Shown: piece by piece, positions 26,304 through 29,537 of the stretch
How positions within the stretch are numbered: position 1 is the stretch's first letter
How the letters are laid out: each line of letters opens with the position of its first letter
Origin: Diplonema japonicum
Lineage: Eukaryota; Protista; Euglenozoa: Diplonemea
Direction of reading: 5' to 3'
NCBI GenBank assembly: GCA_964019335.1
Contig: OZ025711.1
Span: forward strand, 62,001-126,000
DNA: 64,000 nucleotides
Notes under the pieces: model-generated
What the model saw: only the letters and a program-made list of their open reading frames with translations
Told to the model about the DNA's origin: nothing
The model's database searches: none
Made by a program: the position numbers and the translations under genes

Positions 26304-29300
26304 TCATTCCTTCAAGATGCCTATTGGGGTGAAGACAGCCAAAGTTGCTTCTGAGTGCGCATCAGAGAAAACTTTAGTGCCGTCCGTTCCGGCTAGCTTT
26401 GTAATGGCGTCAGGTCCTGCGGGATGCTCCTCTACAAAATCAGTAAGGTCATAGACCTTGCCGTGCAGTGCTATCCAAAGGTCGGTTTCTGAACTGTGCT
26501 GCGCAAGCTCTTCCTTTGTGATGAGCCGTTTGGTGGGGTCCAGAGGTTTCTCCTCTGCAGCTTGAGAGGGTGCTTGTGATGCGGTGGCCTTGCCTTTGCT
26601 TGCAATATGCTCCGCGGCTAGCTTACCGAACACAACACACTCCGTGAGCGCGTTACCCCCCAACCGGTTCCGCCCATGCAGCCCGCCCGTCACCTCCCCT
26701 GCTGCATACAGACCTTCGATCACTTTTTTTTTTTTTTTTTTTTTTAAATTACTGTTTTACTATTTTCCATACCATTGCCATCCTTCCCCAAGACCCTAGC
26801 ATGGTCGTCTATCTTGAGCCCGCCCATAGAGTAGTGCAGCACTGGAGTCACAAGTCCTGCATAGAAGTGTCCCCCAAGGTCCACAGGCACGTTGTTGAAG
26901 TGTGTCTTCCCGAACCTGTCCACCCCGTTGACCGCATCCCTGTTGTACTCCTCCATGGTGACCCGCAGCACCGACTCTTCGACCCCCAGGTGCTTGGAAA
27001 GGTCTGTCAGCGTGTCGAATTTCTATTATTTTTGAAAAATAAATTTTTGAAAGGGGGTATACCTTCAAAAGCCCCTTTTGACTGTAAATAGGGATGTGTT
27101 TGTCAGCGTGCACAGCAGCCCCTTCGTGCACCACCAGCGTGAAGGAAAGGTTCATGGGGGATGCCTGCAGCATGGTAGAGGAGACGTGGGCACGGGTCCC
27201 GAGCTCGTCCACAAAGCGTGTGCCGTTTTGTAGGAGCATGATGCCGCCCATGCCACGGAGGAGCTCTGCGGAGAGCGTCTTGGTGACTGCGTCCGGGTGG
27301 GAGGGGTCGATGAAGCCGGTGGGGTGCACCTGGATGTTCTGCATGTCGATCAGCTGTGCATCCAGCTTTTCCGCCATTCTGTGCCCGTCACCGGTGCACC
27401 ACTTCCCATTCGTTGTTGCAAAGGCCGCCAGGTCTGGACGGTACTTTGCTAAGAACGTGCCTTCACCGCCGAGCGCATAGCCACCTGTTCCCAGCACCAC
27501 GTTCCTCGCCCTGATGGTCTTCTTCCCGTCCTTCCCCTCGACCACAACACCTTCTATCTGCCCGTCCTTCATCACCAGCTCCGTGGCACGTGTCTTCTTC
27601 ATGATCACAAAGCTCTTGTCCTTCGCATACTTGTCGATCATTGCGTTGATGCTCATTGTGATCTCCGCCCCCGCCATCCCATGCGTGGGCCTGTACGTCC
27701 TCGGCTTTTCATGCCCGCCCATCTGCACCACCTTGTCCAGGTCCATGCCCACCCGCTCCCTCAGGAACATCACTGCCTCGCCCGCCCCTTTGATGAAGGC
27801 GTCCAACATAGGGAAGCTCGTCTCGAAACCGCCCGACCTCATGACATCCTCTCTGTACTTGTCTTCGGTGTCCCCGTCGTGAGTCAGATCCCTCGCCACA
27901 AGCACACCGTTTATGCCCGAGGAGGCCTTGGCGCTGTTGCCACCTATGAAGGCCTCTTTCTCCACCATCGTCACACGGTGGCCTTTGTCAAGTAGGACCA
28001 AGCTTGCTGTGAGGCCTGCCAGACCACCGCCGATGACAACGACGTCAGTATCGAACAGGGAGGCATCACCGTCTCCTGTGATGTGGCGCAGAGCGTGCCT
28101 TGCGAAGTCAGGACCGTTGTAGTGCCTGCCAAGGGCAAGCAGGGAGTGGTCCTTCGCGAGCACCTTGTCAAGTATCTTGTCGTGTGAGCTACCTGGCGCC
28201 ACGTGTGCTGCAAGCTTTCCAACAGTTGTGTCGAGCAGTTCAAAGTCGATGGTCCCTGAGGCAAGCGGCACAGGTGCGGCCCGCTCCTGCCGTGCGTTGC
28301 GCTCAGCTTGCTTCTCTAGATCGTCGAAGTTCTTCAACACTTTCAGCGCGGAGCTCATTTTAGCGACCGTGTTGATGAGCGCGACGACCTCCTCGTGCGA
28401 CAGGAAGGTCTTCTGCAGCACGCTTTCAGGGACAAGCAACACCTTCAGCGCCGTCCCGATGCCCATGAGGGCAAGCTTGCCGTGCAGCTTGCACTTCTGG
28501 CATGAGATGCAGTCCAGCTCCGCAGAAACGTTCTTGAAGACCTCCTTGAACTGCCTCTTCAGCGACTGCCGTGTAGAGGTTCCGTCGGCCTCTTTGAACA
28601 GCAGCGACTCATCAAAGGCCTCAAACAGTGACGAGCAGGTGGACATGACCTTCGAGTCCAACAGCCTGCGCAGCAAGACCTTCGTGCGTGCGGTCTCATC
28701 CGCGTCTGTCCCTGTAATCGTGGCCTTCTCGAGCACTGGGGCGGCCTTCATGAGTGACCTCAGCAGCACGACAAAGGAGAAACGCAGGTTCCTTATGTAG
28801 TCGGGGTTGCCTTTGAACTGCTTGACATAGCGGTCAAGGTTCGGTGCCCAGGCGGTCGTGCCTTTGGATTTAGAGGGGGGGTAGAAGGCATCAGATATGT
28901 GCAAGTTGATAGAGGCGTGCATTCCAGACAGCAGCCTGTACAGCACACGCTGCTCGTAGCACAGCGTGTCGACTGTGGACCCGTCGCGGAGACAGTTTTC
29001 GTTATAAACACGCTCCCACACCTGATTCCCGTTGTAGCCTGTGAAGGACTCCGGGTTGAGCAGCAGGTTGACGTAGTCATGGGAGTCGGTGGGGATGTTG
29101 GAGCACATGTCCTGCCAGAACTCAGGGAGGTTGGGGTCGCAGGATTCTTCTTCTTTGACACTTTCTTCTTCTTTGCTGGAGAGACGCTTGTCGACAAGAC
29201 TCTCGAAGGTGCTGAATGGCGTCTCGGTGCTTCCACCTTTGAGGTCGCACTTCGCAGGCTCCTGTGCTTCGAGGGGGTCGGGGAAGTCGTTGCCGCAGGA

Positions 29301-29537
29301 GGGCTCGACAGTTGCGTCGCGGAAGCACTGCCTGTCAAGCTCCACCCTGAAGAGCCGGAAGTACGTGGTGTTCACGAGCTCATTGAGAATGCTGAACAGC
29401 TGGAGTGTGTTGGCCTCCTCGATCATCCCCACGTTGCAGGTCGCCCCGTCAAGCACCTCATCAGGGGGGAGCTCCGTGGCGCTGCAATGACACACAACAC
29501 ACAGCACAACCACACACTGTGATAGCTTTATGAGCAT
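26304..29537 (-). CDS. Ero1 - flavocytochrome-type fumarate reductase (Osm1/Frd1-like) - cytochrome b5 fusion, ~1047 aa, 3 exons
   Basis: Exons 29537-27063, 27022-26773, 26722-26304. Signal peptide; Ero1 motifs [37 protein letters not shown]; FRD motifs [47 protein letters not shown]; b5 motifs [14 protein letters not shown] and FSDAHS. Confidence 0.92.

Follow-up and report, generated by a model that had tools for sequence, protein, structure and literature searches.

How disulfide bonds are formed when oxygen is absent is a question of long standing, for which the yeast Ero1-Osm1 pair represents, to our knowledge, the only eukaryotic answer proposed, and one that depends on a weak interaction between the two proteins. 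A gene from the diplonemid Diplonema japonicum raises the question of whether both partners of such a relay can operate within one and the same polypeptide. This gene lies on the minus strand, between positions 29537 and 26304, of a 64,000-nucleotide (nt) stretch of assembly GCA_964019335.1 (contig OZ025711.1, positions 62,001 to 126,000 of the forward strand), analyzed here as a whole and referred to as the window. Its predicted product of 1047 amino acids (aa) carries, in this order, a signal peptide, an Ero1 domain, a helical adaptor domain, a soluble fumarate reductase (FRD), and a cytochrome b5. The reading favored here, with a probability of approximately 0.62, is that of a flavocytochrome of the endoplasmic reticulum (ER) lumen in which a disulfide-generating Ero1 is joined to its own electron sink, and in which the oxidation of thiols would be coupled to the reduction of fumarate. 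A relay between Ero1 and a soluble FRD is already known; the new elements are the conserved single-chain form with its cytochrome b5, the adaptor, and an Ero1 subfamily that lacks the C-x4-C motif.

Gene structure and transcript support

Three exons make up the gene, and the two introns between them, both of the GT-AG type, measure 40 and 50 nt. The joined exons provide a coding sequence of 3144 nt that is in frame and has its sole stop at the end. The D. japonicum protein was searched exon by exon, the exons being joined solely for this check of length and frame, while a transcript-derived orthologue from Diplonema ambulator (P0001) served as a stand-in for analyses that require the whole protein. 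Contigs from four public runs (X1, X2, X3, and X7) were aligned to window positions 26150-29750, and conservation was assessed on an alignment of 88 full-length fusions of the same architecture. The features of the gene, in window coordinates, are the following.

29537, minus strand: start ATG (translation)
27063..29537, minus strand: exon 1, 825 stop-free codons from the ATG, holding the signal peptide, Ero1, the adaptor, and the first ~330 residues of the FRD
27023..27062, minus strand: intron 1, 40 nt, GT..AG, skipped exactly by a contig of public run X1
26773..27022, minus strand: exon 2, 250 nt, C-terminal part of the FRD including HYSMGG (PF00890 positions 327-390)
26723..26772, minus strand: intron 2, 50 nt, GT..AG, holding a run of 22 A (A22); placed by collinearity with P0001
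26304..26722, minus strand: exon 3, end of the FRD (NRLGGN; PF00890 positions 389-414), a tether of ~40 aa, and cytochrome b5 (PF00173, 8e-21)
26306-26304, minus strand: stop TGA (translation)
29478..29537, minus strand: predicted signal peptide, aa 1-~20 (hydropathy maximum of 2.9 over 10 aa)
28338..29399, minus strand: Ero1 domain, aa 47-400 (Pfam PF04137; PDB matches)
29247..29297, minus strand: loop cysteine pair C81...C97, candidate shuttle disulfide (conservation and predicted disorder)
28491..28511, minus strand: inner active site C343-x-x-C346-x-x-C349 (CISCQKC), followed by KLHGK; invariant in 88/88
28071..28244, minus strand: four-helix adaptor domain, ~aa 432-489 (conserved D436, L460, L469, F478)
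26646..28046, minus strand: soluble FRD domain, spanning both introns (PF00890 spread over the three exons)
26343..26519, minus strand: cytochrome b5 domain (PF00173, E 8e-21; both His ligands)

The initial annotation of this locus, made from the nucleotide sequence alone, had placed the signal peptide, a full Ero1, and the N-terminal part of the FRD in one uninterrupted exon, and both translation and Pfam searches bear this out. Since the ERO1 (aa 47-400, E 3e-84) and FAD_binding_2 (aa 498-794, E 8e-53) matches both lie inside the single open frame of exon 1, the fusion of Ero1 to the FRD is independent of any splice call. A stop or an assembly break between the two halves, around 28100-28330, was looked for and none was found: the frame is open throughout, and runs X3 and X7, which originate from the same organism as the window, yield contigs identical to it across 26756-29680 and 27322-29560, respectively, and therefore argue against a break. 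Run X1 stems from a relative that is ~97-98% identical to the window, and one of its contigs runs unbroken through 27756-28522, thus spanning the Ero1-FRD junction. Another X1 contig omits exactly positions 27023-27062, a segment whose ends read CT..AC on the plus strand and hence GT..AG on the coding strand; this exact skip identifies the contig as spliced cDNA and confirms intron 1.

Between X1 and the window there are 27 synonymous and 10 non-synonymous differences; of the latter, four affect the signal peptide and three the hinge that follows Ero1, a pattern that appears as expected for purifying selection across all three domains. Run X2, from another relative, carries an in-frame insertion of 6 nt (GCTCCT) at 28282, also within this variable hinge, and the stretch between Ero1 and the adaptor domain is in all appearance the least constrained of the protein. 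No read support for intron 2 was obtained from the public-run contigs, because these break at its A22 run. Its removal renders exons 2 and 3 collinear with P0001, exon 2 aligning to residues 826-907 with 56% identity and exon 3 to residues 909-1044 with 71% identity, in both cases without a gap; it is thus homology that supports this splice. The two short introns that had been proposed to add the rest of the FRD and the b5 domain are in this manner both retained, the first on the basis of a cDNA contig and the second by comparison with the orthologue. The fusion gene is real: it is covered in pieces by spliced X1 contigs, and individual transcripts of other diplonemids contain the fusion.

The surroundings of the gene contain homopolymer runs and low-GC stretches (window 26225-26260 and 26726-26750, and also 25800-26120 and 29640-30100). 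The runs consist of ~25 C past the stop and of the A22 within intron 2, and it is there that the public contigs break; intergenic GC content is 33-40%, compared to 55-60% in coding regions.

Conserved modules and origin of the fusion

The Ero1 half is recognized by PF04137 with 283 bits against a cut-off of 27, over profile positions 2-353 of 354, and its PDB matches include human Ero1-alpha (3AHQ/3AHR, ~1e-43) and yeast Ero1p (1RP4, 1e-32). With canonical Ero1 proteins (3AHQ, 1RP4, and plant ERO1) it shares the full-length PF04137 domain as well as the CxxCxxC, NPExxTGY, and LSGxHxSI motifs. The latter two, which contact the flavin (the first reading NPESFTGY in this protein), align to 3AHQ together with a conserved Arg, and residues N161, P162, E163, T166, Y168, H207, and R260 are invariant among the aligned fusions. 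A cysteine matching C85 of human Ero1-alpha, which pairs with the first Cys of CxxCxxC, is also present. The two forms differ in the shuttle pair, which in human Ero1-alpha is a C-x4-C (CGRRDC in the 3AHQ alignment), whereas in the fusions the candidate cysteines are separated by 10-43 low-complexity residues on a loop predicted as disordered. C81 is kept in 82/88 fusions and C97 in 85/88, and in the AlphaFold model of P0001 the shuttle-loop residues 71-109 have a predicted local distance difference test (pLDDT) score below 50, a disorder that would suit a mobile shuttle without proving one. The C-x4-C is present in plant, amoebozoan, and other Ero1 sequences recovered by the same search, and its absence from the fusions is read as a subfamily difference and not as exclusion from the Ero1 superfamily. 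The fusions also differ from canonical Ero1 by their additional C-terminal helical domain and FRD-b5 part and by forming a separate clade, so that their Ero1 half is regarded as a distinct subfamily.

Directly after the active site (window 28491-28500 region), all 88 fusions read C-K/R-L-H-G/A-K, where human and plant Ero1 proteins read R-L-W-G-K. This Trp-to-His change (KLHGK versus RLWGK) was considered as a marker of the fusions and rejected, as some Ero1 proteins with C-x4-C also carry His (or Tyr).

A hydrophobic N-terminal stretch is found in 14/14 aligned homologues, and inspection of the protein C-terminus revealed no KDEL-type end. The putative ER location is one that the hydrophobic N-terminus and the nature of Ero1 suggest between them.

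The segment that joins Ero1 to the FRD had initially been taken for a plain linker, a description that needs to be replaced: it consists of a short hinge of variable sequence and, after it, a conserved domain of four helices, which in the P0001 AlphaFold model has a pLDDT of ~90. This adaptor has no Pfam family match. A hidden Markov model (HMM) built for it and run on the protein set gathered during the homologue searches matches 146 proteins, all of which also contain Ero1, and 0/120 stand-alone FRD-b5 proteins; since its matches are confined to Ero1 proteins, the adaptor belongs to the Ero1 side of the fusion. Searches with the adaptor as sole query yielded no usable match in the ESM Atlas and, with phmmer, 11 matches, among which P0001 and P0004 alone are credible, the others being weak and split over multiple stretches.

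Some proteins depart from the common order. Within the long-loop Ero1 clade, P0164 (Diacronema lutheri) and P0166 (Pavlovales sp.), both from the Pavlovales (haptophytes), end 17-25 residues past the adaptor and may be genuine unfused forms consisting of Ero1 and adaptor; P0166 is also recorded from an MMETSP transcriptome. P0157 and P0164 are apparently unfused relatives, but may be truncated models or have an FRD gene beside them. In P0009, two b5 stretches follow the FRD. P0175, from a JGI metagenome contig of 2170 nt, contains Ero1, adaptor, and b5 but no FRD and, if real, hints that the b5 heme could partner Ero1 directly; it is taken as a lead only, because it comes from a single 2.2-kb contig.

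The FRD half ranks closest to yeast Osm1 in the PDB (5GLG, 6e-54), followed by Shewanella Fcc3 (1QJD, 7e-33) and urocanate reductase (6T85, 2e-25), and the FRD of the orthologue model superposes on 5GLG with a fold TM (template modelling) score of 0.86. It displays a Rossmann GxGxxG motif and a sequence of the non-covalent-FAD (flavin adenine dinucleotide) type (GGNSxKAxSGIN), aligned to Osm1, and the fumarate-site motifs HPTG, AELLRG, ELGTR (DELGTR), HYSMGG, and NRLGGN are all present. The b5 domain reaches 74 bits with PF00173, against a cut-off of 23.7, and contains the heme-ligand motifs EEHPAG and DAHS. The motifs named in the initial annotation for the three redox domains (CxxCxxC, NPESFTGY, DELGTR, HYSMGG, NRLGG, and the b5 heme ligands EEHPAG...AHS) can accordingly all be read in the translation, and the catalytic-type residues behind them extend well beyond this species: CxxCxxC, the flavin-contact His and Arg of Ero1, the six residues that match Fcc3 H365, E378, R381, R402, H504, and R545, and both b5 ligands (H1009 and H1032 in P0001 numbering) are each invariant in 88/88 fusions. 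On the basis of this residue conservation and of the PDB ranking, identity as a urocanate reductase or another reductase was rejected.

Several soluble FRDs with additional domains offer points of comparison. Fcc3 (1QJD), like the fusion, is a soluble FRD with an N-terminal donor domain and the same set of catalytic His and Arg residues, but its donor, a tetra-heme c domain, receives electrons from the respiratory chain, whereas in the fusion this position is occupied by a thiol oxidase flavoprotein and the single b5 is C-terminal. The NADH-fumarate reductases of kinetoplastids (ApbE-FRD-cytochrome b5 reductase) are likewise euglenozoan multidomain soluble FRDs with the same FRD core; they differ in their ApbE flavin transferase and NADH-b5 reductase domains, in their location in the glycosome or mitochondrion, and in their use of NADH as donor. 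Closest in order are the stand-alone FRD-b5 proteins of fungi and diplonemids, named ‘fumarate reductase (NADH)’, ‘Osmotic growth protein’, or ‘flavocytochrome c’ in databases, which share the succession FRD-tether-b5 but are devoid of the signal peptide-Ero1-adaptor part. The D. japonicum assembly itself encodes three such paralogues of 647 aa, in addition to one further FRD and one SdhA-like gene, and the fused FRD-b5 is 34% identical to the stand-alone form. Since these paralogues share both order and homology with it, the FRD-b5 part of the fusion is a pre-existing module placed behind Ero1. Two of the paralogues, L003 and L004 (G000:C65:64435-65820 and 78881-80266), are separated by 14 kb on the same contig and have equal scores, resembling a recent duplication, and the third is L005 (G000:C48:110783-112168); EukProt contains a D. 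japonicum protein that matches the L003 open reading frame (ORF) with 100% identity.

The architecture of ERO1, FAD_binding_2, and Cyt-b5, for which a search across eukaryotes had been proposed, recurs in several supergroups and is not a one-off of this genome. A junction-centered search returned 279 proteins, and among the 120 matches listed nearly all contain PF04137 and PF00890, and most also PF00173. The fusion is found in six diplonemids (D. ambulator, D. papillatum, Rhynchopus, Lacrimia, Flectonema, and Namystynia), as single Trinity transcripts or gene models, as well as in diatoms (Cylindrotheca, Nitzschia, Leptocylindrus, Pseudo-nitzschia, and Mayamaea), labyrinthulids (Hondaea and Mucochytrium), cryptophytes (Guillardia and Hanusia), the green alga Prasinococcus, and the amoebozoan Copromyxa. 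The haptophyte Chrysochromulina tobinii contributes a fragment, and in the ESM Atlas several clusters, each with 55-98 members, show the same architecture.

In a tree of the Ero1 half, all fusions lie on one side of a 100* branch, apart from the Ero1 proteins with C-x4-C, and the window protein is sister to that of D. ambulator within a diplonemid clade; in a tree of the FRD-b5 half, a 100* branch separates 30 fusions from 33 stand-alone FRD-b5 proteins of fungi and diplonemids. Because both halves form single, well-supported clades, a single fusion event followed by spread is suggested; one origin fits the data, and repeated independent fusions are not indicated. Both trees are without an independent root, and vertical descent and transfer are not distinguished by them.

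Database names for the fusions are mostly generic (‘fumarate reductase (NADH)’, ‘flavocytochrome c’, ‘cytochrome b5 heme-binding domain-containing protein’), and annotation pipelines have already met the fusion, as indicated, for example, by the label ‘ero1-like protein precursor fumarate reductase, partial’ of the C. tobinii fragment. In the openly searchable literature, no paper describing an Ero1-FRD or Ero1-FRD-b5 fusion was found, and subscription journals may hold one. The D. japonicum genome is not yet annotated (PMC13598402), and a study of D. papillatum metabolism counts three FRDs and never mentions Ero1 (PMC8611851).

Proposed electron path and competing explanations

The sequence of events proposed for this protein would begin with the signal peptide directing the chain into the ER, where reduced PDI-type proteins would hand two electrons to the loop pair C81/C97, a role suggested by its conservation and predicted disorder. 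Thiol-disulfide exchange would subsequently move the electrons to C346-C349, next to the Ero1 FAD, according to the established Ero1 mechanism, for which the residues are present. The Ero1 flavin would then be re-oxidized within the same polypeptide by the Osm1-type FRD flavin, either directly or via the tethered b5 heme, and the FRD site would convert fumarate to succinate by means of its conserved His and Arg residues, the proton being donated by the ELGTR Arg. The net reaction would be 2 R-SH + fumarate -> R-S-S-R + succinate, with no O2 consumed and no H2O2 produced. With the fumarate/succinate couple near +30 mV and PDI near -180 mV, the net reaction is energetically favorable.

This scheme has a direct precedent in yeast. 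Osm1 in the ER takes electrons from the Ero1 flavin and gives them to fumarate (Kim et al. 2018, PMC6242907), and Ero1, Osm1, and fumarate together yield disulfides in an oxygen-depleted, anaerobic-like assay (PMC6242907). The binding between the two partners is weak, with a dissociation constant of 150-200 uM (PMC6242907), and docking puts Ero1 at the site that the N-terminal heme domain occupies in Fcc3 (PMC6242907), a position that echoes the fusion, in which Ero1 is also N-terminal to the FRD. Yeast Ero1p and Osm1 (and Frd1) share with the fusion the same two catalytic modules and the proposed chemistry, from thiols to the Ero1 FAD, the FRD FAD, and fumarate; they are, however, separate proteins, and Osm1 is without a heme domain, while the fusion consists of one chain with an adaptor, a C-terminal b5, and the Ero1 subfamily described above. 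The fusion thus likely makes the encounter between Ero1 and FRD permanent, as a hard-wired version of the yeast relay. The Ero1-Osm1-like relay put forward in the initial annotation is in this respect reinforced by the closeness of the FRD to Osm1; the special role under anoxia that accompanied it is not. The fusion is the only PF04137 match in an assembly of 62,535,345 bases and, being the only Ero1 found there, looks like the general Ero1 of the organism rather than a spare one for anoxic conditions. This count depends on the completeness of the assembly, which is uncertain: k-mer completeness is 90%, and BUSCO values are low, which the authors of the genome note blame on a poor lineage set (PMC13598402).

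A number of observations weigh against the coupling of thiol oxidation to fumarate reduction. A single VKOR homologue (313-aa frame) was detected in the assembly. Ero1 may therefore not be the sole ER oxidant, VKOR being a possible alternative source of disulfides in this compartment. One gene of the Erv1/ALR type was also found, with a frame of 187 aa that is not QSOX-like. (The loci of these two genes are G000:C29:476733-477152, L011, and G000:C41:159950-160234, L010.) C-x4-C, sought between the first structural Cys and the core, occurs in 0/88 fusions, and substrate entry may thus differ from that of known Ero1 proteins. The P0001 model has a predicted TM score (pTM) of 0.61. Typical b5 potentials lie near 0 mV, above those of soluble-FRD flavins, and the heme may for this reason lie off the path to the FRD; in addition, we know of no ER fumarate carrier. 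The protein-database searches matched a D. japonicum paralogue at 100% but retrieved no full-length product of the fusion gene predicted from the transcriptome of this species, and direct expression evidence consequently comes from the relative sampled in X1 and from other diplonemids. Lastly, coupling, cofactors, and location are all deduced from sequence.

Among the competing explanations, the one that fares best is that O2 stays the normal acceptor of the Ero1 flavin, with the FRD-b5 part serving as an auxiliary outlet when oxygen is scarce, or diverting electrons from O2 and limiting H2O2 in this manner. Diplonemids are aerobes that are also found in oxygen-minimum zones, and the FRDs of D. 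papillatum are expressed regardless of oxygen level (PMC8611851); the core residues of the fused Ero1 are also conserved with respect to the O2-using Ero1-alpha. Such an outlet is nonetheless unlikely, as no second Ero1 was found in the assembly to share the labor, and the sequence gives no sign of whether reactivity towards O2 has been kept.

A second proposal, that the FRD-b5 part acts as a lumenal oxidase of free flavins that keeps ER FAD oxidized, being tethered to Ero1 for co-location and without any intramolecular transfer, follows a role put forward for Osm1, which has a second flavin pocket and oxidizes free FADH2, FMNH2, and riboflavin (Kim et al., PMC6242907); Ero1, according to the same study, can be supplied ‘either by free FAD or by a direct interaction’. 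It leaves the b5 domain without a role, and an adaptor and a fixed domain order that have been kept in 88/88 fusions since one inferred origin suggest more than co-location, so that this proposal appears doubtful.

It is very improbable that the FRD-like domain uses a substrate other than fumarate, or that the module feeds electrons into Ero1 in a reductive or regulatory role. Relatives of the fold do include urocanate reductase (6T85) and ketosteroid dehydrogenases, and b5 domains are able to work in either direction; yet the full fumarate set (HPT, ExxR, ELGTR, HYxMGG, NRLGG) is invariant, Osm1 and Fcc3 stand far ahead of urocanate reductase in the ranking given above, and soluble FRDs with non-covalent FAD are one-way reductases (PMC6242907). 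Finally, an artefact of assembly or gene modelling, in which two neighboring genes were read as one, is scarcely credible: apart from the missing read support for intron 2 nothing was found in its favor, and it is in effect refuted by the stop-free frame through the junction, the independent public contigs, the spliced contig, and the 88 full-length homologues, which include Trinity transcripts of six diplonemids.

The intramolecular transfer of electrons from Ero1 to the FRD therefore continues to be the preferred explanation, and it can be carried further, to a version in which diplonemids, and perhaps also diatoms, cryptophytes, and labyrinthulids, would have no Ero1 other than the fusion. 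In a large share of marine protists, the making of ER disulfides would then depend constitutively on fumarate and release no H2O2, by way of a hitherto unrecognized Ero1 subfamily with its long-loop cysteine pair and its own helical adaptor; the b5 heme would be an obligate bridge between the flavins, and an exchange of fumarate and succinate across the ER membrane would be implied. This extension is tentative, and the odds are against it being correct in full.

A natural fusion of Ero1 and FRD provides independent evolutionary evidence that the link between the two proteins is physiological, the more so as it apparently arose once and was kept, with its redox residues intact, across diplonemids, diatoms, cryptophytes, labyrinthulids, a green alga, and an amoebozoan. 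The presence of all modules in a single polypeptide should allow the electron path to be measured directly. If the coupling is true, oxidative folding in abundant marine protists may yield no H2O2 and may tolerate hypoxia, and an ER carrier for fumarate and succinate should exist.

Neighboring genes in the window

The downstream neighbor of the fusion gene (24609-25826, minus strand) is a 405-aa ORF, rich in Cys and His residues whose arrangement is reminiscent of CCCH-type zinc fingers, for which Pfam yields no match at an E-value of 1e-5. Other genes of the window, with no evident link to the fusion, encode a cyclic-nucleotide phosphodiesterase (11247-14360, minus strand), a multi-ankyrin protein (36742-38664, minus strand), and a methylene-tetrahydrofolate dehydrogenase/cyclohydrolase (39392-40402, minus strand). 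Further along, on the plus strand, two long ORFs (44032-46155 and 45204-47213) overlap in different frames, the second of them with an endonuclease/exonuclease/phosphatase domain, and the two may belong to a single gene, containing either an intron or a change of frame.

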